Below are positions 3,188 through 50,436 of a DNA stretch of 64,000 nt, piece by piece. A program made the translations under genes and the position numbers. Where the stretch lies: the IMG/VR virus record IMGVR_UViG_3300042289_000986, positions 62,001 through 126,000 of that record. The stretch is one strand, 5' to 3'. Numbering within the stretch: the first letter of the stretch is position 1; each line of letters starts with the position of its first letter. The notes under the pieces were generated by a model. The model was not told where the DNA came from and did no database searches. It saw nothing but the letters and a program-made list of their open reading frames with translations.

Positions 3188-3196
3188 TTTTGAAAG

Positions 3197-3653
3197 TGGA
3201 GGTGAGGAGAGTTGAACTCCTGTCCAAATAATCTAGGCTAAAAGGTCTACATGTTTGAGTGTCTTTAGCATTTCAGCCACCATACGGTAACGGAGACTTT
3301 AGGCTGCATAGTGACACTAACTGAGTTTATAGTCTGCCTGTAGACATTATCGCAATCTACATACGGTTGATATTTTGTTGTTACGTTAGAACTACCAACA
3401 ATCTAACAACCTCTGCTATCAATGATTCTTTAGAGGATCCAGAATCAAGGTTCTTAGGCGGCTAAGAGCATCTCTTCATCCGCATATGAGGCGAGAACCT
3501 CATCAGCGTTGTTGAAAATACTCTCGGCTTCTGCCAAGAGATCAGAAGTGAAATCTTCTGCATTTAGTTTTTTAATCGATTTTTTACGAGGCCATCGATT
3601 AACCTCGACATGCACTTTTAGTTTCAACTATCTGTCGAAACCAGTACACCCCC
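3197..3653 (-). ncRNA. ssrA: tmRNA (about 457 nt)
   Basis: 5' GGGGGTGTACTGGTTTCGAC; 3' GACAGGAGTTCAACTCTCCTCACCTCCA; acceptor stem with G3.U70; internal tag frame 3561-3454 ending LLAA-stop. Confidence 0.95.
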
Positions 3654-9466: not shown

Positions 9467-9571
9467 ATGACATTAATAATAGGAACAATAGTCTTAGCAT
9501 TTAACATTAAACTTGCATGTTTAGGTTATTTGGTAATGATTACAGAAATGTTTGGCAGACACACTCGATAA
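9467..9571 (+). CDS. 34-aa hydrophobic peptide with strong SD (not in track)
   Basis: AAAGGAG-ataaca-ATG; MTLIIGTIVLAFNIKLACLGYLVMITEMFGRHTR. Confidence 0.55.
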   Translation: MTLIIGTIVLAFNIKLACLGYLVMITEMFGRHTR

Positions 9572-9596
9572 TGAATGATTCTGACTAACGTTTTTG

Positions 9597-9630
9597 AAAC
9601 AAGGGTAGAGAAATCTACCCTTGTTTTTTT
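9597..9630 (+). terminator. Intrinsic terminator
   Basis: AAACAAGGGTAGA-GAAA-TCTACCCTTGTTT then T-run. Confidence 0.85.
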
Positions 9631-9657
9631 ATAACTTAATGATATATTGTTTACATG

Positions 9658-9744
9658 GGTGCGATGGCTGAGTGGTCTAAAGCAGGAGTTTACTAAACTC
9701 TCGAAGTTTAATCGCTTCCGTGGGTTCGAATCCTACTCGCACCG
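9658..9744 (+). tRNA. tRNA-Ser(ACT)
   Basis: Acceptor GGTGCGA/TCGCACC, G73, long variable arm, loop TT-ACT-AA. Confidence 0.88.
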
Positions 9745-9750
9745 TTTTTT

Positions 9751-10164
9751 ATGGAAATAACAGAATACGATCCGTTTAAAAAATCAATTGTTCCTTATGG
9801 CTTAGATAGGGGTGCTCCTAAATTTGATATAATTGAAACAAAAACTAAAAAAGATCAGCACTACAATCTTGCAGTGCAACAAGCACAAAAAGAATTTGAA
9901 AATCTTAAACAAATAGCTGATGTAATTAATAAACAAGCTCAACAAATAAAAGAGCGTTTAGAAATTACAGAACTTGTATATAACGCCGAACGTACCTTTA
10001 CCCCTGTTGTTGGAGCCAACTACTGGCTTATAAAAGATACAAAAAAAAATAATATAAAAATTGTTGTTTTGGGTCCGAAAGAATGGGCTACAAAACATCC
10101 AGAAAATTATGAATATATTTCAGAAGTTCAATTTTTAGCTAATGGACTTTGGGAAAAGTTGTGA
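9751..10164 (+). CDS. DUF2452-like protein
   Basis: PYG..RGAPKF, coiled coil, F.PVVG.NYWL, W at C-end. Confidence 0.6.
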   Translation: MEITEYDPFKKSIVPYGLDRGAPKFDIIETKTKKDQHYNLAVQQAQKEFENLKQIADVINKQAQQIKERLEITELVYNAERTFTPVVGANYWLIKDTKKNNIKIVVLGPKEWATKHPENYEYISEVQFLANGLWEKL

Positions 10165-10394: not shown

Positions 10395-10485
10395 GGGTAG
10401 ATGGCTGAGTTGGTCTAAGGCGTCCGACTTGAAATCGGAAGTGGGGGAAACTTCACCGTGGGTTCGAATCCTACTCTACCCGCCA
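10395..10485 (+). tRNA. tRNA-Ser(TGA)
   Basis: TCCGA-CT-TGA-AA-TCGGA; long V-arm; GCCA end. Confidence 0.93.
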
Positions 10486-21475: not shown

Positions 21476-21566
21476 GCTGGATTAGTGTAACTGGAAGCAC
21501 CGACAGTTTTATAAACTGTGTGCCCTAGATGAGGGCCGAGCGCGGGTTCAATTCCCGCATCCAGCA
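21476..21566 (+). tRNA. tRNA with TAT (Ile) anticodon and long variable arm
   Basis: GCTGGAT/ATCCAGC; ACAGT-TT-TAT-AA-ACTGT; V-arm GCCCT-AGATG-AGGGC; A73. Confidence 0.85.
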
Positions 21567-26982: not shown

Positions 26983-27831
26983 ATGAAAACTTTAGTTATA
27001 CCAGATGTCCACCAAAGGATCGAATCGGTCAAATCAATTTTAGACGCTGAAAAAGACTACGATGAAGTAGTTTTTCTCGGTGATTGGGTTGATTCTTTTT
27101 ATGAGCCACCGAAAGTTGCTGGTTTTGAACAAACTTGCGAATACTTAAAATATCTTGTTTTGGAACATCCTAACAAAGATAAATTTGTTTTTTTAATTGG
27201 AAATCACGATTTAAGTTATATTTACGAAAATAAAAATTTTTCACCTAATCCAATTTCAAAAACTTTAAAATATTATTGTTCTGGTTTTACAATTTCTAAA
27301 GCCAGAAAATTTCGTCGTGTGTTTTTTGATCATGGTTTAAAAGATGATTTCTTTTTTACACATTTTAAATTTGCACATCAAACACAAGGATGGACTTTAT
27401 CTCATGCGGGAATTTCAATTAAGTTTTTTCCTTATGGTTATACTATGGATCGTTTTGTAAACGAACTTCTCCCTGATGTTTGGAAAAATTTTAGAAATTT
27501 AGAATATAATCATAACGAGATCATTTCCGCTGCTGGTTATCATCGCGGAGGAAGCCATCCAGTAGGTGGTGTTATATGGCACGATTGGAGAGCAGAATTC
27601 CATCCTATTTTAGAAACTGGTAAACAAATTGTTGGTCACACAACAATCAAAGATCCTGAATGTATTCACATGAATACACCCTTAGAATGTTGGAATTTAG
27701 ATACAGAAAAAGACTACGGGGTTATTATTGATGGGCGTTTAATAACCAAAAAAATACCAATCCAAAAATCAGTTTATAATAAACTATCAAGTAGGGTTAG
27801 TAATTTATCAAATTATGGTGGAATAGCTTAA
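26983..27831 (+). CDS. Metallophosphoesterase
   Basis: PDVH, LGDWVD, GNHD, SHAG, VGHT. Confidence 0.85.
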   Translation: MKTLVIPDVHQRIESVKSILDAEKDYDEVVFLGDWVDSFYEPPKVAGFEQTCEYLKYLVLEHPNKDKFVFLIGNHDLSYIYENKNFSPNPISKTLKYYCSGFTISKARKFRRVFFDHGLKDDFFFTHFKFAHQTQGWTLSHAGISIKFFPYGYTMDRFVNELLPDVWKNFRNLEYNHNEIISAAGYHRGGSHPVGGVIWHDWRAEFHPILETGKQIVGHTTIKDPECIHMNTPLECWNLDTEKDYGVIIDGRLITKKIPIQKSVYNKLSSRVSNLSNYGGIA

Positions 27832-28055
27832 CAGTTAAGTATTATCATGACTGTTAAAGAATTAATAAATCGATTACAACAAATCAGTAATCAAGAAATG
27901 AAAGTTGTTGTGGATGGCTATGAAGATGGCTTTGATGATATCAAAGACCCAAAATTTATTGTTGCTTATGAGCAAATAGATCGTGATTGGTATAACGGAA
28001 AATATGAACAAAGTTCTTCTGGACAAGGTGGCAATCTTATGCTACTCTTGCCTAG

Positions 28056-28469
28056 ATGAAAAGAAAAGTTTTATATCTCATAACAGGACCGTCTGGTGCT
28101 GGTAAAACTACTCGCGCTAAAGAATTGATGCGCGAAAAGGACATTAAGCATCATTACGAAGCAGATATGCTTATGATTGATCGTAATGGTGATTACGCAT
28201 TTAATCCTAGAAAATTAAAAGAATGTCACAATTGGTGTCAGAAAGCAACCGAAAGAGCTATGCTTCTCGGTGAAGCTGTTATTATTTCCAATACCATGAC
28301 AATGCAATGGGAAGTTAAACCGTATATTGAAATGGCAAGACATCACGGCTATCATGTCATTATTGAACATTTGACCACAGAATACAAAAACATTCATGAT
28401 GTTCCACAGGAAATTGTGGAAAAAATGAAATCGAGGAGAGAATTTTTTAAATTGGAGGATTTTGAATAA
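28056..28469 (+). CDS. P-loop kinase (AAA_33 / polynucleotide-kinase-like)
   Basis: GPSGAGKTT, EAD, SNT, HDVP. Confidence 0.8.
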   Translation: MKRKVLYLITGPSGAGKTTRAKELMREKDIKHHYEADMLMIDRNGDYAFNPRKLKECHNWCQKATERAMLLGEAVIISNTMTMQWEVKPYIEMARHHGYHVIIEHLTTEYKNIHDVPQEIVEKMKSRREFFKLEDFE

Positions 28470-29121
28470 TATGAGCATAGAAAAAATTATAGCAAGAGAT
28501 CATAAACTTAGTGAAGATTATCTTAAAGAAGCCAAACTTAATACTTGGCAAAAATTAAATTTTCATATCCGTTCTTGGACAAATAACAAATTTGGCGTCT
28601 GGGATATTTGGGATATTGTTCCTTATGGTTGGCAAAGATTTTATTACGACAAAATCAAAACCATTTTTAAACCACATCACTCTAGACTTCGTAAAGCTAT
28701 TCCTCGTCAATGGTGGGATCTTAGTGGTCTGATTGTTGAGATTAATTTTGAAATCATTAAATCCTTTTACGAAGATGAATACTCAAAGGGAATTGTTGAT
28801 TGGGACGCTGATGAACACCACAAAAAATTTGCTGAATGGTTGGAAGCATCTTACAAATACATCACTGTGGAACGCCAAGAATTCGAAAAACAAAAAGATG
28901 CTGCATATCCAAAAACAGATAATTTTTCTGATTGGTTTGGAGAAGAAAAAACTGATAAAAATGGCGTTGTTACTCGCACTATGAAAACTTGTGAAGAACG
29001 CTATGGAAAATCATATGAAGAGGTTTATGCTGAAGTTAATAGACTTGAAGCTCTTATTGATAAAACTGACACAGAAATATTAACAGAACTCATTAAAAAA
29101 AGAGATTATTTTTGGACATAA
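28462..29121 (+). CDS. Hypothetical protein
   Basis: Trp-rich ORF ending FWT. Confidence 0.55.
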   Translation: MNNMSIEKIIARDHKLSEDYLKEAKLNTWQKLNFHIRSWTNNKFGVWDIWDIVPYGWQRFYYDKIKTIFKPHHSRLRKAIPRQWWDLSGLIVEINFEIIKSFYEDEYSKGIVDWDADEHHKKFAEWLEASYKYITVERQEFEKQKDAAYPKTDNFSDWFGEEKTDKNGVVTRTMKTCEERYGKSYEEVYAEVNRLEALIDKTDTEILTELIKKRDYFWT

Positions 29122-29125
29122 TATC

Positions 29126-29518
29126 ATGGCTAGATATGAAAATTTTATAATGACGGAAGACTTTTTGGATTCTAACCCAAAGGCCATTTTTGTATTTGGT
29201 GATAATACAATTCATCAAGGTTATTGTGGTGCAGCAATATTGAGAGATCACCAACAATCATATGGTTTTATTACAAAAAAATATCCTGATAATGAAGATG
29301 AATCTTTCTATCAACCCAAAGAGTATGCTGGTATATTTTTTGATGAGCTTGTAAACCTAAGAGAAAAAATTAAAGAAGAGCCATTTAAAACTTTTTATAT
29401 TTCTCAACTAGGTGGTGGTTTAGCAAACAAATATCATATTTGGGAAAAAATTATTAAAAATGGATTAGAAAAAAACTTGCAAGAATTTCCTAATGTGGTA
29501 TTCTTATGGGAACAATAA
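29126..29518 (+). CDS. Macro-like fold protein
   Basis: IFVFGDN..G..GAA; LGGGLA. Confidence 0.5.
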   Translation: MARYENFIMTEDFLDSNPKAIFVFGDNTIHQGYCGAAILRDHQQSYGFITKKYPDNEDESFYQPKEYAGIFFDELVNLREKIKEEPFKTFYISQLGGGLANKYHIWEKIIKNGLEKNLQEFPNVVFLWEQ

Positions 29519-29727
29519 CATGATTTACGGATTTAATTTAACTACGGAATATGCTTTAGATTTTGGTCTTTTTTATAAAGTTAGAAATTTTAAAGATGGT
29601 ATTACTTTTTTTGAGTTTTTATTAAATTTAGACCTTTATAAAAGAGATCATAACCCTCAAATTCGATTTAATTTGGTTATATGTAATTTTACTATTTTTG
29701 ATATTACATTGTATAATGTAAGGCACT

Positions 29728-30816
29728 ATGACTCTTATCTGTGATAAACCTTCTGTTGAAGATGGGTTTGGTATATACGAACATAACTTTTGTGGTATAC
29801 CTTCATATTTGATTATTCCTGCAATTGATGCGAAATGGAATAAAACCAATTTACATTACCGATCTTTAATTATAAGCAAAGAGACATCAGAAGTTCTTTC
29901 GAGTGGTTGGCCGAAATTTTTTAATTGTGGTGAAAAACCAGATTGTTATCCTGATCCAAACAAATATGATGATTGGAACATACAAGAAAAACTTGATGGT
30001 TCATTGTTGATTGCAGACTATGTTAATGGAAAATTTAATATGCGAACTCGCGGAACAGCTTCGTATATAAAACAAAACAATTTTTCTGATTTTGAACTTT
30101 TAAAAGATTATCATCCAAATATTATTTCTTTCTTAGAGCAAAACAATCATTTATCTTTACTTTTAGAAATTATTACACCAAACAATGTTATCGTTATTAG
30201 AACACCAATGGTTCAATTTTACTTGCTTGGTGCAATCGATAAAACAACTTTAAAACCGTTGCCTTTAAAAAAGGTTGAAAACATTTCTCAAGAATTAAAA
30301 ATTCCAATGCCTGAAGTTTACTCTTTTGATAGTCTTGAAGAAACCGTTAAAACAGTTAAAGAATGGAAGGGCAAAGAAGGAATTGTTATATCATATAACA
30401 ACAATCAAAATAGAATTAAAATTAAATCTGATTGGTATTGTTGGATTCATAAAATTAAATCCAAATTAAATTCTGAATCAAATTTAATTGAATTTTATGT
30501 GAATGAAGGTCTTCCATCATACAAAAAATTTTACAATATTATTAAAACTAATTTTGATTGGGAGCTTGCTGAACAAATGACAGGGGATATCTCAAAAATG
30601 GTAGAATGTGGAAAAAAAGTAAAAAAAGCTATCAAAGGAATGGGATTTTTTGTTGATATTATTAAACATTATCCCACAAGAAAAGAACAAGCTCAACAAA
30701 TAATGTCATCATATGGAGAAAATCAAAGTAATAAGACGGGAATGATTTTTAATTTATTGGATGGTAAAAGTTTAACTAACGAACAACTAATCAAACTAAT
30801 GCATCAAAATTTATGA
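29728..30816 (+). CDS. RNA ligase (T4 Rnl1-like)
   Basis: KFFN, EKLDGS (adenylated Lys), TRG, EGIV, RIKIKS. Confidence 0.85.
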   Translation: MTLICDKPSVEDGFGIYEHNFCGIPSYLIIPAIDAKWNKTNLHYRSLIISKETSEVLSSGWPKFFNCGEKPDCYPDPNKYDDWNIQEKLDGSLLIADYVNGKFNMRTRGTASYIKQNNFSDFELLKDYHPNIISFLEQNNHLSLLLEIITPNNVIVIRTPMVQFYLLGAIDKTTLKPLPLKKVENISQELKIPMPEVYSFDSLEETVKTVKEWKGKEGIVISYNNNQNRIKIKSDWYCWIHKIKSKLNSESNLIEFYVNEGLPSYKKFYNIIKTNFDWELAEQMTGDISKMVECGKKVKKAIKGMGFFVDIIKHYPTRKEQAQQIMSSYGENQSNKTGMIFNLLDGKSLTNEQLIKLMHQNL

Positions 30817-31091: not shown

Positions 31092-31520
31092 ATGAAAATA
31101 GTAACTCTTTCATCTCATGCACTACTTCCTAAAAAAGGTTCTGTAAATGCAGCAGGATATGATCTTTATTCTATTGAAACTGGTGTAATAAAACCTAAAG
31201 AAAGACGATTAATACCAACTGGAATAGCTCTAGCAATTCCTTCTGGATATTATGGAAGAATTGCTCCAAGATCTGGATTGGCTTTTAAACATGGAATTGA
31301 TGTAATGGCTGGCGTTATTGATTCAGATTATCGTGGAGAAGTTGGAGTAATACTTTATAACTCTGATAGCTTTAATGATTTTATTTTTAATATTGGAGAT
31401 AAAATAGCACAAATTATTTTTGAAAAACATTATGATTTTGTTTTTAATGAAGTTTTTCAAATTAAAGATTTAAATGAAACACAAAGAGGAAGTGGTGGAT
31501 TTGGTTCTACTGGAGTTTAA
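31092..31520 (+). CDS. dut: dUTPase
   Basis: AGYDL, RSGLA, GVIDSDYRG, IAQ, RGSGGFGSTG. Confidence 0.97.
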   Translation: MKIVTLSSHALLPKKGSVNAAGYDLYSIETGVIKPKERRLIPTGIALAIPSGYYGRIAPRSGLAFKHGIDVMAGVIDSDYRGEVGVILYNSDSFNDFIFNIGDKIAQIIFEKHYDFVFNEVFQIKDLNETQRGSGGFGSTGV

Positions 31521-32017
31521 TGAATATTTTTATTTTAGACGAGCATCCTGCTACCGCAGCAAGATATCACTGTGATAAACACATACCTAAAATGTGTGTT
31601 GAGTTATATCAGCAATTAGGTTCTGCTGTTATTCGTCATGGTGCTACACCTGCCCAAATGCCTTTGACATCCAAAGGAACACCATTAAAGGGTGGTTATC
31701 ACAATCATCCTTGCACTCGTTGGTGTGGCGATAGCAGAATCAATTTTATGTGGGCAATGACACATGCTTTGGCTTTGTGTGAGGAATATACCAGAAGATA
31801 TTCTAAGATTCATAGCTGTGAAGCTGGTCTTAAACATTTAGCTGATATGCAACATATGATCGAAGGCGAACAAGTTACTCCGTTTGCTCAAGCAATGCCT
31901 GATCAATATAAATCACACGATGCTGTCTATTCTTATAGACAATATTATATCCATGAAAAGAAAAACTTTGCCAAATGGGAAAAATTAAATAACATTCCCG
32001 AATGGTGGATACTATGA
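31520..32017 (+). CDS. Pyrimidine-dimer DNA glycosylase / DenV family protein
   Basis: MNIFILD..P..AA..HCDKH..KM..E; NHPC..W; EYTRRY.K.H; AQAMPD.YK. Confidence 0.8.
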   Translation: MNIFILDEHPATAARYHCDKHIPKMCVELYQQLGSAVIRHGATPAQMPLTSKGTPLKGGYHNHPCTRWCGDSRINFMWAMTHALALCEEYTRRYSKIHSCEAGLKHLADMQHMIEGEQVTPFAQAMPDQYKSHDAVYSYRQYYIHEKKNFAKWEKLNNIPEWWIL

Positions 32018-32625
32018 ATACAAAAATTACAAAACTAATTGCAGATGTTTCTAAAAAATGTATTGAAAATAAAATAAACTTTCGTTTGGAATATGCAGAA
32101 CAAGTGGATACTAACAACATTCCATGTAGTGGTTTTTTTGATGAAAAAAGTTTAGTCGTTGCCACAAAAAAGAAAACAGTCCAAGATTGGTTGGATATCT
32201 TAATTCATGAGTCGTGTCATTTAGATCAGTTTATTGAAAAATCTTCTGTTTGGGTTCCAGATGATTTGGGATTGTATGTTGTTGAGGATTGGATTAGCGA
32301 AAAACGTAAAAAGTTTAATTTGAGTAAAGTTACTGAAGCATTTCAAAACACAATTCTTCTTGAATTAGATTGTGAAAAAAGAACTGTCAAAAAAATTAAA
32401 AAATATAAACTTAATTTTAACATAGATTTGTATATCCAAAAAGCTAATGCTTATTTGTATGGTTATGGTGTTTCTTATAAGAAAAAAGTATGGCCAAATA
32501 GACCCTATGAAAAAGCTTTTATTATTAATAAAATGCCAAAAAAGTTTTTGAAAAAAGAAGAGTACTTTAATATTCCAGACCACATACTAAGTCTTTATAA
32601 GTATTCTTATGAAAAAAATACTTAA
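32002..32625 (+). CDS. HExxH putative metalloprotease
   Basis: CSGFF; LIHESCHLDQ; ELDCE. Confidence 0.55.
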   Translation: MVDTMNTKITKLIADVSKKCIENKINFRLEYAEQVDTNNIPCSGFFDEKSLVVATKKKTVQDWLDILIHESCHLDQFIEKSSVWVPDDLGLYVVEDWISEKRKKFNLSKVTEAFQNTILLELDCEKRTVKKIKKYKLNFNIDLYIQKANAYLYGYGVSYKKKVWPNRPYEKAFIINKMPKKFLKKEEYFNIPDHILSLYKYSYEKNT

Positions 32626-32831
32626 ACCATCGGAATTAGAAGATGCTGTATATTACTCTGATTTTAGTGGAAAAATATTAAACGAACAACCTCCGATAGA
32701 GATTAATATTGACTTTAATTATGGGTCAAAGTATGATGGATGTAAGTTAGAATTACATTTGGATGATGAAGATTTTGACCAGCTTTTAAGCTTTTTAAAA
32801 ACCAAATTATCTGAAAATTTTAAACATAATT

Positions 32832-33419
32832 ATGAGCAGTTTAAATAAAGACATTGTATTGGTTTTAAACAAAAATTGGCAAGCTATTAATATCAGTACA
32901 CCAGCCGATGCATTATCCATGATGTATTCGAATACTGCTACTGGATTAGATATTCGTGGAAAGGACGATATGGTTCCTTTAACTTGGAAACAATGGGTCG
33001 ATTTATCATGTTCCGAAGACGATCATTTTGTAAAAACGATTCAGGGTAATGTAAAAATTCCTAAAATTATTATTTTGTGCAGATATGATAAAGTTCCTAA
33101 AAAACGTCCTAAAATAACTCGTAAGGGTATTTGGATTAGAGATCAGGGGATTTGTCAATATACTGGTAAAAAAATAAATCCAAACGAAGGAAATATAGAT
33201 CATGTAATTCCAAAAAGCAGGGGCGGTGCTACTGATTGGACTAACTGCGTTTTAGCACATAAAAAAGTAAATGCTAAAAAAGCAGATAGAACACCAGAAG
33301 AAGCTGGACTGAAATTAATTCGTCAACCGTATGTTCCGAAAGAACTTCCAGTTTCTTTTTATCTTACAAACAAATATAACATCCAAGAATGGGAATTGTT
33401 TTTGAATTCTAAATCATGA
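32832..33419 (+). CDS. HNH endonuclease (McrA/HNH_5-type)
   Basis: VLVLN; RDQGICQYTG; IDHVIPKSRGG..W.NCV..N..K..RTPEEAG. Confidence 0.9.
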   Translation: MSSLNKDIVLVLNKNWQAINISTPADALSMMYSNTATGLDIRGKDDMVPLTWKQWVDLSCSEDDHFVKTIQGNVKIPKIIILCRYDKVPKKRPKITRKGIWIRDQGICQYTGKKINPNEGNIDHVIPKSRGGATDWTNCVLAHKKVNAKKADRTPEEAGLKLIRQPYVPKELPVSFYLTNKYNIQEWELFLNSKS

Positions 33420-33823
33420 GATCATCTTGGCCAAAACATGCAATGGAACTTGCAAAGGTTGCTATGCTCAGATCCGAAGATCCCCATAAAAAAGTGGGTG
33501 CTTGTGTTCTGGGACATAACAACGAAGTTTTAGCTGTTGCTTATAATGGTTTAGCCAGTGGTGTAAACGTTCACAATAGCTTTTGGAAAGATAGAGACGA
33601 GCGTAGACCTTATATGATTCATGCTGAAACAAATTGTTTGGCAAGAATTCGTCAAGGCGAAGGGAAGTTAATAGCTTGTACTTTGCTACCTTGTTCCAAT
33701 TGCGCTATTAACATTGTGGCTCATGGAATTAAAGAAGTGTTCTTTAATGAAATGTACAGCAGAGATTACAAGGCTGTGGAAATTTTTAGTTTTTATGGCG
33801 TTAAGTGCCATCAACTTGATTAA
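33416..33823 (+). CDS. dCMP deaminase
   Basis: RSED..KVGA, YNG, HAE, PCSNC. Confidence 0.9.
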   Translation: MRSSWPKHAMELAKVAMLRSEDPHKKVGACVLGHNNEVLAVAYNGLASGVNVHNSFWKDRDERRPYMIHAETNCLARIRQGEGKLIACTLLPCSNCAINIVAHGIKEVFFNEMYSRDYKAVEIFSFYGVKCHQLD

Positions 33824-34719
33824 AGTTCGTATGCCTCTTTTGCCAATCTATAATCGATTGGTTCAGCCATAGAATATTCTTTGACTGCTTTCTCTATACT
33901 TTCTTTGACAGTTAGAAGTCCTAATCCAATACTTTCAATTTTATCCGTATTTAAAATACAATTACTTCTACCAACTTTAAATTTGGCATCAGGAATAGAA
34001 ACAAAATTCCACTTTGGATTTTCGAATCCATAAGACTTTAAAATTTCAACAACTTCTTTGGCTTCAATACTACCTTTATTGGTAACATTATAAACTCCTA
34101 AAGGTCTATTTTTTTCAATGAACTTGTAAACAAAATTTACAAGATCATCAACATTAGTAATAGAATTTTGTTGGCTGATTAAATTGTCATAATTTAATAA
34201 TTTCCAAAGATAATTTTTAGATTCAGGAACGCCATTAAACGGTATACGAATTCTGAAAATATATCTTTCCAAATGTTCGCTCAACTTTTCAAAAGCATCT
34301 TTTGTTTTTGAATAAAAAGAACTTTGATTACTATCTGCTCCAAAATTTGGGAGATCGTCTTCTGTGTATTGTTGTGAATACCCATCATAAATACAACCAG
34401 ATCCAATATGAATAATTGGAATTCTGAGACGGTTGGCGACTTTAGTGATATATAAAGGTACTGTTACGTTATAATGGTAACAATTTTCTTTATCGGTTTC
34501 ACATGCTTCAACATTGGGTCTACCAGTATAACCAGAACAATTTATAATCCAATCAAAATTTGCTTTTGGATAGTCTGATTCTCTATGTAAAAATTTTACA
34601 AATGTATCAGGATCTTCATAATTCAAATCAGATTTACTAATATGAACTATGTTATGTTTTTCATTAGCTTTTGCTAAATAATTTCCAATATATCCCTTTC
34701 CAAGTATTAATACTTTCAT
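33820..34719 (-). CDS. RmlD-like NDP-sugar epimerase/reductase; start reassigned to 34719
   Basis: MKVLILGKGYIG, GYTGRPNVEACE, SGCIYDG, FYSKTK. Confidence 0.85.
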   Translation of the reverse strand: MKVLILGKGYIGNYLAKANEKHNIVHISKSDLNYEDPDTFVKFLHRESDYPKANFDWIINCSGYTGRPNVEACETDKENCYHYNVTVPLYITKVANRLRIPIIHIGSGCIYDGYSQQYTEDDLPNFGADSNQSSFYSKTKDAFEKLSEHLERYIFRIRIPFNGVPESKNYLWKLLNYDNLISQQNSITNVDDLVNFVYKFIEKNRPLGVYNVTNKGSIEAKEVVEILKSYGFENPKWNFVSIPDAKFKVGRSNCILNTDKIESIGLGLLTVKESIEKAVKEYSMAEPIDYRLAKEAYEL

Positions 34720-34720
34720 A

Positions 34721-36700
34721 TTATTTGATTGGACATGCACCGCCTTCACATTCCAAACCTTGAATAGCATCTTCTCCCATATCAGAAGATTTCATTGTTT
34801 GAATTGGTTTAACTTTAGCTTTATTTTTTTCGTATGTTTCACCATTAATTTCTTCGTATGGTGCTTGTTTGAATCCGTGATTTTGTCTCAACAAAAAGCT
34901 TACAGATTTAATTGAATTTTGATAATTTTCTTCTAACCATTTTTTAAGCTCTGGAAGTTCTTCTTCCGAGTAATATGCGGTAACACTAACTGCATTATCT
35001 GACCAAATAGTTTGAAGTTTTTTAACTGTTTCCAGTTGTTTGATAACTCCCATATCTGCTGCAAAAATTGCACCATCTGGTGTTTCGCACGGAAACTCAA
35101 TAACAACGGTATCATGATTTTCTGAGCCATCAAAATTGATGACATATTCGGTATGATATCCCATATCTCTGCAATATTGAACTAATGGATCATTACTTGC
35201 CATACGAACACGACGAGTATAATATTTTGAATAAGCGGGGTGGATTCCTGGTGTAGCACCACCAAGAAGACTTAATGTTCCACTAGGCTTAATTGTTGTA
35301 AGTTTAATACTACGAGGCCATCCTTTTTGTTTACTCCACTCTTTATCAAATTTTCTCAATTCTTTATAACAATCGTCAAGCCAATCGACTTTATCTAATG
35401 CTTGACAAACACCAGTTACTCCCAAACCAAGACGCATGTTCTTGTGAACAATTTTATTTGTTTCATCGTGAATGAATGGAAGTGCAGCGATTGCTTTTTG
35501 TGTTTTATAAAGCAATCTGGCACAATCAACCAATTCTTCTTTGTTTGAAATATTATTCAAATAAAGTTCTGAGAGATTGCAACACTCATAAGAGGCAAGA
35601 CTAATTTCACCACATGGGTTTGTACCAACTACATTGTCTTCATCGGTTGGATAAAGACTAGAATCCTTCATTGGACCATCTTTAATTCTTCCATATTTTT
35701 GAGAAAGAGGAAGGTTAAAGAAACCATAAGGTTCGCCTTTTGCAAAACCAGTTTCTTTATCTGTTGTATAACCATTTTGCCAGATCTCGTTTGAGATGTG
35801 GGAAAAGTCATCAGCATAAATCGTGTTGTTAGACATTGCTCTCCAGTTAGGAATATTTCCCAATGACCAATTTTTGGCGCGTAAAAAGAGATAATCATCA
35901 GGATCTCCTATAGCAATTTGGGCAGAGCGACGAACATTACCAGAAACAACAATACTTCCAATAATATTACAAATATCTAATACATCGATAGAACGAAGCT
36001 TTTTGCCTTCTCTTGTTTGAAAGATTTTTGCAATTTTGTCAATACCTTCGATTAATATTCCTGCTCCGCTTGCTTGTCCACCGAAACCTTGAATCTTTTC
36101 ACCTGCACCACGAATAAGGATTGTAGAATAATTAAAAGATTTTCCTGTTACATAAAATGCATGAAGAACTCGATCTAAAAGTTCGATCCAGCCTTCACGA
36201 CTATCTGGAATAATAAACTTTGCATCTTTTGTACATTCATGTGTAATCGTTACACCTTTTTTAATTTTAGGAAGTTCGTGAATATCTTCTCTACGAATAG
36301 AAAATCCGACACCACCACCAAGCATTAAATTTTCAAATAAAAACAAAAATGCTTTTGGTTCATTCATAGACACATTCCAACAATTCAATAAAGAATTTGC
36401 TCCAAAACGCTCAACTGTGTTTGTTCCTAATTGCCAAAGCATTCTTCCTGCATAGTTGCAACGCAAGTTGAAAATATGATCAAACAGTCTTTCGGCTTCT
36501 TCTTGTGTATAATCTGCACCTAGTTTTTGTGCTCCGTTGATACAACGTTGAATTGTTTCATGCCACTCTTCTTTTTGTCCATCGTCTTTTAAACGAGCAT
36601 ATGTTCTTTTATAAACAATATAACCAAGTCCATTGAAACCCCAATTAGTTTTTTTGTTAGAATATTTTTTAACAAACGAATCCGAAATAATTTTTTCCAT
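34721..36700 (-). CDS. nrdJ: Class II (adenosylcobalamin) ribonucleotide reductase
   Basis: KRTYAR, NC, GGGVG, NVRRSA, TNPCGE, TIKPSGT, C-terminal CEGGACP. Confidence 0.93.
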   Translation of the reverse strand: MEKIISDSFVKKYSNKKTNWGFNGLGYIVYKRTYARLKDDGQKEEWHETIQRCINGAQKLGADYTQEEAERLFDHIFNLRCNYAGRMLWQLGTNTVERFGANSLLNCWNVSMNEPKAFLFLFENLMLGGGVGFSIRREDIHELPKIKKGVTITHECTKDAKFIIPDSREGWIELLDRVLHAFYVTGKSFNYSTILIRGAGEKIQGFGGQASGAGILIEGIDKIAKIFQTREGKKLRSIDVLDICNIIGSIVVSGNVRRSAQIAIGDPDDYLFLRAKNWSLGNIPNWRAMSNNTIYADDFSHISNEIWQNGYTTDKETGFAKGEPYGFFNLPLSQKYGRIKDGPMKDSSLYPTDEDNVVGTNPCGEISLASYECCNLSELYLNNISNKEELVDCARLLYKTQKAIAALPFIHDETNKIVHKNMRLGLGVTGVCQALDKVDWLDDCYKELRKFDKEWSKQKGWPRSIKLTTIKPSGTLSLLGGATPGIHPAYSKYYTRRVRMASNDPLVQYCRDMGYHTEYVINFDGSENHDTVVIEFPCETPDGAIFAADMGVIKQLETVKKLQTIWSDNAVSVTAYYSEEELPELKKWLEENYQNSIKSVSFLLRQNHGFKQAPYEEINGETYEKNKAKVKPIQTMKSSDMGEDAIQGLECEGGACPIK

Positions 36701-49614: not shown

Positions 49615-50436
49615 ATGCAAGAAAAAGAATCTAATAACATATTAAACGTACAAGATGCGCTTAATGCATTAAGTGAAGTTTCGGAACTTTTTAAAATACA
49701 AGTCTGGGTTCCTTCTAAAAAACAGAATTATTCTTTTAAAGAAATTGACGCTAAACAACAAAAAGATTTGTTGAGTGCTGCTATGGATGATAATGTTTAC
49801 AATTTAGATTTTGTTAAAACTTTTTATAATATTTTAAAAGAAAACCTCTTAGAAAAAGATAAAAGCGAAATCGATAATTTATTAGTGGTTGATAAAATAG
49901 CGATTGCTTTGGGGTTAAGAATGCAAATTTCTCCAGAAATTTTAGTTGTTTTTGATGAAAAAAATAAAATATCTGAAAAAGTAAAACTGTCTTCAATTGT
50001 TGAAAAATTTAAAAATTATGAATGTAATTTTGAAAAAAATGCAGAAATTAAAAACGATAAAGTTGATTTAAAAGCAAAATTAACATATCCCACAATTAAA
50101 AAAGAATTAGATTATGATCTATTTTTTGGAAAATCATCCAAGAAAGCATCTGAAGTTAAAACAAGTGAAGATGTTCAAAAAATTATTTCTGAAGCATTTT
50201 TAGCTGAAATTTCAAAATATATAGACTCTATTATCATCAACCAAAGTGAAATAAATCTTAATCAAATTTCTTTTGATCAAAAAGTAAAAGTAATTGAAAA
50301 ATTACCTAGTGCTTTGATTCAAAAAATATTAGAAATAATATCTCAGTGGAAAGCATCTTTAGATGAAGTTTTAACTGTAAAACACCAAAATTACAGTAAA
50401 GCTATTACTATAGATAGCATGTTATTTTTGAGTTAA
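49615..50436 (+). CDS. Second gp26-like baseplate hub protein
   Basis: VWVPS..FKEI..KQQK.LL; D...I..LR; L.YPTI. Confidence 0.6.
   Translation: MQEKESNNILNVQDALNALSEVSELFKIQVWVPSKKQNYSFKEIDAKQQKDLLSAAMDDNVYNLDFVKTFYNILKENLLEKDKSEIDNLLVVDKIAIALGLRMQISPEILVVFDEKNKISEKVKLSSIVEKFKNYECNFEKNAEIKNDKVDLKAKLTYPTIKKELDYDLFFGKSSKKASEVKTSEDVQKIISEAFLAEISKYIDSIIINQSEINLNQISFDQKVKVIEKLPSALIQKILEIISQWKASLDEVLTVKHQNYSKAITIDSMLFLS

Follow-up and report, generated by a model that had tools for sequence, protein, structure and literature searches.

Bacteria read the serine codons AGU and AGC with a tRNA-Ser whose anticodon is GCU, and A at position 34 is almost confined to tRNA-Arg(ACG), as an earlier note on this DNA correctly stated. 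A 2021 review counts all split-box ANN tRNAs except Ile, Ser(ACU) included, as universally missing, and describes phages as being without the same "prohibited" genes (PMC8007984). A 2026 re-survey of GtRNAdb finds split-box A34 tRNAs to be sporadic and always beside the G34 form (bioRxiv 10.64898/2026.05.15.725136). A phage locus that appears to encode a tRNA-Ser with anticodon ACU raises three questions: whether the gene is real, which codons its product would read, and what a phage would gain from it.

The locus lies in IMG/VR record IMGVR_UViG_3300042289_000986, a complete genome of 211,587 bp with direct terminal repeats and 32% GC. Bases 62001-126000 of this record, the whole 64,000-nt stretch of DNA that was analysed, are called the window, and coordinates below refer to it unless another sequence is named. 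Its genes include those for a tail sheath and for a large terminase of the T4 type; since the closest cultured terminases, from rhizobial T4-like phages, are only 35-39% identical, the virus is taken to be an uncultured large myovirus. The locus is present in 20 lake-water metagenome runs, none of which is an RNA run. For the whole genome ARAGORN reports 20 tRNAs and one tmRNA. The Ser tRNAs are ACT and TGA only, GCT being absent, and the phage carries its own tRNA-Arg(UCU). Nearly all of the 20 tRNAs are U34 or G34 types for A/U-ending codons; an exception is Arg(CCG), at genome positions 49736-49808 and so outside the window, which reads CGG, the rarest codon of the phage with 7 occurrences. 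No CCA-adding enzyme (PF01743) was found in the phage. The tmRNA adjoins an ORF with an HTH domain:

3196-3653 (-), tmRNA, Rfam 138 bits, tag peptide ADEEMLLAA
3677-4849 (-), 390-aa ORF with HTH domain

The tRNA-Ser(ACU) gene and its immediate surroundings contain the following features:

9600-9630 (+), terminator-like hairpin with a 10-bp stem (9600-9609/9614-9623), a GAAA loop and seven T (9624-9630)
9640-9648 (+), extended -10-like element TGATATATT, read from the sequence, 9 nt 5' of the tRNA
9658-9744 (+), tRNA-Ser(ACU), class II, 87 nt (ARAGORN; Rfam RF00005)
9692-9694 (+), anticodon A34-C35-T36 within loop 9690-9696 (sequence and ARAGORN drawing)
9745-9750 (+), T-run immediately 3' of G73
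9751-10164 (+), 137-aa ORF without Pfam match
10395-10485 (+), companion tRNA-Ser(UGA), for UCN codons (ARAGORN)

The Ser body, long arm, G73 and loop TT-ACT-AA described in the earlier note are right in every detail by ARAGORN and Rfam. The ARAGORN cloverleaf has an acceptor stem of 7 bp, all Watson-Crick, a D stem of 3 bp, and anticodon and T stems of 5 bp each, together with a long variable arm whose stem is 5 bp, discriminator G73, and T loop TTCGAAT. The anticodon loop reads U32 U33 A34 C35 U36 A37 A38. With Rfam model RF00005, whose gathering score is 29, the gene reaches 54.1 bits. Model score, four intact stems, long variable arm and G73 are those of a bacterial-type class II tRNA-Ser, and ACU is complementary to the Ser codon AGU. 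A long variable arm with G73 marks Ser identity; the class II tRNAs for Leu and Tyr have A73. CCA is not encoded, as is the case for most other tRNAs of this phage. An exact match of 21 nt in the T arm links the two neighboring Ser tRNAs, genome positions 72456-72476 in Ser(UGA) being identical to positions 61-81 of Ser(ACU). Just 5' of the hairpin, an ORF of about 34 codons (9468-9572, +) with a good Shine-Dalgarno-like AAAGGAGA would, as read from sequence only, encode a hydrophobic product.

Four more lake-water runs (X10, X11, X12 and X17) have Logan contigs that span the gene, with no listed difference. Seven IMG/VR contigs, from seven metagenomes, matched an anticodon-arm pattern in which position 34 was left as N, and all seven have A. 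A search of other data and relatives, which the earlier note had proposed, thus returned A everywhere and GCT in none of the four runs and seven contigs; a sequencing or assembly error is ruled out. Three of the seven contigs (L004, L006 and L009) are syntenic with the window, and the tRNA is 100% identical in all three. The junction between the tRNA and the 137-aa ORF is kept in these relatives, while the ORF product is 93% identical in L006 and 70% identical in L004; in the latter, 87 of 87 tRNA positions are retained despite this divergence downstream and an upstream spacer that cannot be aligned. Full identity of the tRNA beside diverged flanks points to purifying selection on the RNA. Among phages more widely, 34 distinct Ser(ACU) sequences form one cloverleaf with 28 consensus pairs, 17 of them with compensatory changes, which occur in every stem, the variable stem included, while ACU is invariant. 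These changes, and the conservation beside diverged flanks, rule out a pseudogene. Judged by sequence comparison, the Ser(ACU) gene is under purifying selection and is neither an error nor a decaying copy.

The sequences upstream of the gene are less constant. Folding of 9596-9634 gives -20.2 kcal/mol (z = -6.4 against shuffled sequences), and the hairpin at 9600-9630, which looks like an intrinsic terminator, would close the unit upstream of the tRNA. It is found in L009 and is absent from L004 and L006, whose upstream spacers are unalignable. The element TGATATATT is possibly the tRNA's own promoter; a scan for consensus promoters assigned none to the tRNA, having passed over this candidate because it has no -35 match, and the element is not kept in L004 or L006. 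The negative promoter scan and the unencoded CCA would suit a gene with no role in translation, whether a decaying or neutral Ser(GCU) copy, an assembly error, or a tRNA-like element serving as an integration site, decoy or processing signal. Most other tRNAs of the phage equally lack an encoded CCA, however, and such an explanation must contend with the same base in four independent assemblies, with perfect conservation beside diverged flanks, with compensatory changes in every stem across 34 variants, and with the persistence of A34 through whole clades. We regard it as very improbable.

Because the D-arm sequence was fixed, all pattern counts for the wider family are lower bounds and describe one sub-family: a looser IMG/VR pattern, with that D-arm, any anticodon stem and R at position 34, matched at least 119 viral contigs, and a scan for ACT only with this D-arm type found 75 IMG/VR contigs. 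Among the matches listed for the looser pattern, ARAGORN called 44 Ser(act) and 67 Ser(gct), so that about 40% of the listed phage Ser(AGY) tRNAs with this D-arm are ACT. A tree was built from an alignment of 119 distinct AGY-type Ser tRNAs, leaving out column 34. Changes between A34 and G34 number 8 on this tree, versus a mean of 39 for shuffled labels, counts that are approximate because the tree rests on about 90 nt. The ACU forms fall into several clades among GCU forms; one clade of 19 sequences, the window tRNA among them, is purely ACT (support 94), as is a second clade, of 9 phage sequences (support 95). GenBank carriers of Ser(act) are two cultured phages:

OR258281, 305983-306070, Ser(ACU) of Xanthomonas phage XaC1
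LC554890, 138609-138698, Ser(ACU) of Ralstonia phage RP13

These two genes share the anticodon and the class II Ser body with the window tRNA, at 72-78% identity, and have C32 where the window has U32; both phages are AT-rich and AGT-rich. Both genes are annotated as plain tRNA-Ser, and the anticodon is passed over without remark in the accessible portion of the XaC1 paper. No report of A34 Ser tRNAs in phages was found in the literature. The term "rare", applied to this anticodon in the earlier note, holds for cellular genomes and fails if a singularity is meant, given 75 IMG/VR contigs and two cultured phages.

Two phage arrays carry both anticodons. Ser(ACU) and Ser(GCU) lie 7 nt apart, with Trp(CCA) after or before them, in L155 (1274-1460) and L163 (2129-2315), and the pair of Ser tRNA sequences is identical in the two contigs. 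The presence of ACU beside GCU fits a division of labor, as would be expected if ACU reads AGU only. Other A34 tRNAs also occur in phages: tRNA-Thr(AGU), a non-Arg A34 tRNA of a family box, in IMG/VR phage contigs L017 (4447-4522) and L059 (9991-10066), and at least 12 Arg(ACG) tRNAs among the listed phage loci of the first set.

Cellular occurrences are fewer. A search of species-representative bacterial genomes with the ACT pattern found a chromosomal tRNA-Ser(ACU) in 20 metagenome-assembled genomes (L131-L150). Most are labeled Paceibacterota, Saccharibacteria or Magasanikbacteria, and the five genomes that were sized are about 0.8-1.1 Mb. Several of the records bear the labels Gammaproteobacteria, Patiriisocius or Acidimicrobiales, which may be wrong, because the three of these that were sized are equally small. 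In most of the 20, the retrieved sequence also holds a Ser(gct) gene nearby; it shares 56-74% identity with the ACT gene and in some cases stands in tandem with it, at a distance of only 18-34 nt. Examples of these loci are:

L135, 3922-4131
L141, 3589-3781
L147, 6977-7536

Ser(ACU) is not general in Patescibacteria, being found with this D-arm in 2 of 301 sampled genomes; its occurrence there is sporadic. A tRNA-Ser(ACU) is also mentioned in passing for an Acidithiobacillus tRNA array (PMC4758250).

A separate phage tRNA family, of 88-96 nt, combines a long variable arm with anticodon UAU, which prokaryotes are likewise said to lack. Its members are:

Window 21476-21566 (+)
L004, 9869-9959
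L032, 7352-7439
L034, 2362-2455
L046, 4661-4752
L059, 9185-9276
L083, 3559-3648
L120, 9188-9283
L122, 6146-6237

In these tRNAs the hairpin of the variable arm has a 7-nt loop, with the sequence CAGAUUA, CAGAUAA or CCGAUUA (CUAGAUGA for the window member), which closely resembles CUGAUAA, the anticodon loop of tRNA-Ile(GAU). The loop may be a surrogate identity element for IleRS, in an AUA reader that bypasses lysidine. Alternatively, these tRNAs may be charged with Leu, like the nematode nev-tRNA-Ile(UAU) (PMC3333845, PMC4300185).

Which codons the Ser(ACU) tRNA would read depends on the genetic code of the phage and on the fate of A34. In alignments of orthologues, AGA falls opposite Arg or Lys and in no case opposite Ser; AGT falls opposite Ser codons in 22 of 30 cases. 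By this comparison the code of the phage is standard; recoding of AGA to Ser, or some other code, is ruled out by the AGA alignments together with the phage tRNA-Arg(UCU). AGA is moreover the main Arg codon of the phage. Deamination of A34 would be a different route to a broader reading. If a host TadA or another deaminase made inosine at this position, a single tRNA would read AGU and AGC, and AGA to some extent, and the phage genome encodes no GCU tRNA. In bacteria and eukaryotes, nearly all A34 tRNAs that occur naturally are deaminated (PMC8007984), as are, in E. coli, the non-native split-box A34 tRNAs His-AUG and Phe-AAA (for Phe-tRNA(AAA), bioRxiv 10.64898/2026.05.15.725136). The phage itself has a single candidate deaminase, which lies in a block of nucleotide-metabolism genes:

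31092-36700, nucleotide-metabolism block
31092-31520, dUTPase
31520-32017, pyrimidine-dimer glycosylase (DenV-like)
32832-33419, HNH endonuclease
33416-33823 (+), sole CDA-fold deaminase ORF of the phage (PF00383 60 bits; NCBIfam ComEB 43 bits)
34721-36700 (-), class II (B12-type) ribonucleotide reductase

The CDA-fold ORF adjoins the dUTPase and ribonucleotide reductase genes, scores only 17.5 bits with the TadA model NF008113 against a cut-off of 150, and is dCMP-deaminase-like; a phage-encoded TadA is ruled out. Known bacterial TadA substrates, Arg-ACG and Leu-AAG, have G36, whereas the Ser(ACU) loop has U36, and U32 as well. I34 would also read AGA, with 1222 occurrences in the phage, as Ser, and GCU has been kept next to ACU in two phages. 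In E. coli, an orthogonal ACU tRNA read AGU at 9.4% and AGG at 0.36%, with AGC and AGA below detection, and A34 showed no A-to-I change (PMC11066159). Other E. coli experiments bear on AGU reading and on fitness: for tRNAPyl, the ACU form decoded AGU more efficiently than the GCU form did (PMC6158751), and overexpression of Ser-tRNA(ACU) improved growth (bioRxiv 10.64898/2026.05.15.725136). Results obtained in E. coli with heterologous tRNA bodies may not transfer to the TadA or ribosome of another host. The earlier note had seen in A34, modified or not, a risk of reading AGA as Ser; the measurements with the orthogonal ACU tRNA speak against it, as does the persistence of the tRNA where AGA is the main Arg codon. 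The AGA alignments, the lack of a phage TadA, U36 and the E. coli data together make an unmodified, AGU-restricted A34 the most likely state, and we think an inosine decoder improbable.

The codon counts proposed in the earlier note show a demand for an AGU reader. The 231 long ORFs of the phage contain AGT 1149 times, AGC 364 times, AGA 1222 times and AGG 112 times. AGT makes up 18.6 per 1000 codons and 25% of Ser codons, three times the share of AGC, so the cognate codon is frequent in phage genes. Its frequency rises to 27.5 per 1000 codons in the blocks of sheath, terminase and very large ORFs, versus 15.0 elsewhere. Loci carrying the two anticodons compare as follows:

ACT carriers, 69 loci, median GC 0.31, AGT/(AGT+AGC) 0.74
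GCT carriers, 66 loci, median GC 0.425, AGT/(AGT+AGC) 0.51

The ACT carriers are AT-rich, with AGT and AGC in a ratio of about 3:1. Within the GC band 0.33-0.45, AGT/(AGT+AGC) is 0.84 for ACT versus 0.56 for GCT (p = 1.8e-6), among loci that are mutually related and with kinship uncorrected. An independent-pairs test of ACT against AGT preference has only 2 well-supported contrasts and so no power, and some GCT-carrying phages are equally AGT-rich. Once relatedness is counted, a link between ACT and AGT is not established, and causality could run in reverse, with the tRNA letting AGT drift upward. Two cultured phages supply independent cases. The stretch of XaC1 that was analysed has 34% GC, with AGT 304 and AGC 70, and the full tRNA set of this phage numbers eight: Ser-ACU, Thr-UGU, Asn-GUU, Phe-GAA, CAU, Leu-UAA, Gly-UCC and Arg-UCU. 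The stretch analysed for RP13 has 41% GC, with AGT 267 and AGC 86, and tRNAs CAU, Ser-ACU, Leu-UAA and Arg-UCU. In either phage these tRNAs serve A/U-rich codons, and the hosts of XaC1 and RP13 are high-GC bacteria. Of the two explanations offered in the earlier note, adaptation to AGT-rich codons is the one that the codon counts, the comparison of carriers and these two phages favor.

We judge it probable, with room for doubt, that the locus is a functional phage tRNA-Ser gene whose product is a Watson-Crick AGU specialist, supplementing the wobbling tRNA-Ser(GCU) of the host. To our knowledge, AGU is served only through G:U wobble in all bacteria. SerRS identifies its substrates by acceptor stem, long variable arm and G73 and takes no account of the anticodon, and the host SerRS would be expected to charge this tRNA. 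Host enzymes would mature it, adding CCA and probably t6A at position 37, next to U36. With A34 most likely left unmodified, the anticodon would form three Watson-Crick pairs with AGU and the tRNA would read essentially nothing else; AGC would be left to the host tRNA-Ser(GCU), and AGA and AGG to Arg tRNAs, the phage tRNA-Arg(UCU) included. AGU is among the commonest Ser codons of this AT-rich phage and would create the demand for a reader, and the presumed gain is kinetic, a faster or more reliable decoding of AGU than wobble affords. The broader proposition is that unmodified A34 tRNAs of split boxes are a naturally selected solution, with ACU as a strictly AGU-specific Ser decoder that arose several times in AT-rich phages and that, in some small-genome Patescibacteria, lies beside a diverged GCU paralogue. 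We consider this about as probable as its opposite.

The other explanation of the earlier note was escape from an anticodon nuclease. A change from G34 to A34 would hide an AGY-reading phage tRNA from a GCU-recognizing host nuclease, or from another tRNA-targeting defense, so that translation could continue after host tRNA-Ser(GCU) had been destroyed. The phage has a nearly complete tRNA set and a tmRNA, and the window holds a cassette, with a phosphoesterase, a kinase and an Rnl1-type ligase, of the kind used by T4 against the PrrC anticodon nuclease. Pfam scans define it as follows:

26983-30816 (+), RNA heal-and-seal cassette
26983-27831 (+), Metallophos phosphoesterase
28056-28469 (+), AAA_33 P-loop kinase
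29126-29518 (+), DUF7831
29728-30816 (+), T4 Rnl1-type RNA ligase

A 219-aa ORF without Pfam match also lies within the cassette, which resembles the Pnkp/Rnl1 answer of T4 to anticodon nucleases. Ser(ACU) is often the sole tRNA of its phage locus (21 of 69 ACT loci versus 6 of 66 GCT loci). ACU, however, cannot replace GCU at AGC, with its 364 codons here, and could thus make up only poorly for the destruction of the host tRNA. Nuclease-evading phage tRNAs of the van den Berg 2023 type are said to work in that a host nuclease cleaves the cellular counterpart and spares the phage version. Phage tRNAs do evade tRNases through changes in the anticodon loop (PMC10264068; PMC13056530). Yet no nuclease targeting tRNA-Ser(GCU) is described in the literature consulted, and for mycobacteriophages Ser(GCU) is described as the serine tRNA that is no known target of nucleases (PMC10264068). 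Neither does escape from defense predict the preference of carriers for AGT over AGC, or the company that Ser(ACU) keeps in XaC1 and RP13, a few other tRNAs all for A/U-rich codons. Despite the RNA-repair cassette, the nuclease proposal gains no direct support, and we rate it unlikely.

Comparison with known tRNAs places the proposed AGU specialist more exactly. The normal AGY reader, tRNA-Ser(GCU), as in Synechococcus phage S-SKS1, has the same class II body, long variable arm, G73 and 3-bp D stem, and the S-SKS1 gene is 80.6% identical to the window tRNA over 72 nt. The codon box is the same and the same amino-acid identity is expected, but G34 reads AGC as well as AGU by wobble, while A34 should be confined to AGU. 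The window tRNA has A34 in common with natural tRNAs of four-codon boxes, namely Arg(ACG) with TadA and, in Lactobacillales and Mollicutes, Leu(AAG) and Thr(AGU). The organisms that carry these tRNAs are AT-rich, and U-ending codons are often abundant in them (bioRxiv 10.64898/2026.05.15.725136). In those boxes any reading of the third base gives the same amino acid, and most of these tRNAs are deaminated to inosine; Ser(ACU), in contrast, belongs to a box split between Ser and Arg, in which superwobble or inosine would lead to miscoding. The engineered E. coli ACU tRNAs (Schmitt 2024; Cui 2018; Raval 2026) have the same anticodon and are AGU-specific, not deaminated, better than GCU at AGU, and either without fitness cost or beneficial. 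They are man-made point mutants or orthogonal bodies, whereas the phage family is natural, diversified and selected over the long term.

Codon-compensating phage tRNAs, such as the sets of T4, T5 and jumbo phages, likewise serve a heavily used codon, and the window Ser(ACU) resembles them in lying in a dispersed early-region tRNA cluster among small ORFs. Those sets use cellular anticodons, whereas the window tRNA has A34. A codon-compensating phage tRNA is thus a known kind; what is new is an anticodon that reviews call forbidden, conserved across several phage lineages.

A34 is avoided by nearly all life, above all in split boxes, and this phage family is a selected natural exception. Engineered Ser-tRNA(ACU), harmless or beneficial in E. 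coli, has been said to sharpen the paradox of A34 avoidance (bioRxiv 10.64898/2026.05.15.725136). That Ser(ACU) is kept under selection where the at-risk codon AGA is common suggests that the ACU anticodon discriminates well by itself, and XaC1 and RP13 would, if the interpretation is true, be the first natural systems for testing why A34 is avoided. Annotators should not discard Ser(ACT) calls as pseudogenes when they meet them in the genomes of phages or Patescibacteria. For phage biology, the family points to AGU decoding as a specific translational bottleneck: Ser(ACU) is often one of very few tRNAs that a phage carries, which would mean, if the proposal is right, that the reading of AGU by G:U wobble is a real constraint for AT-rich phages.
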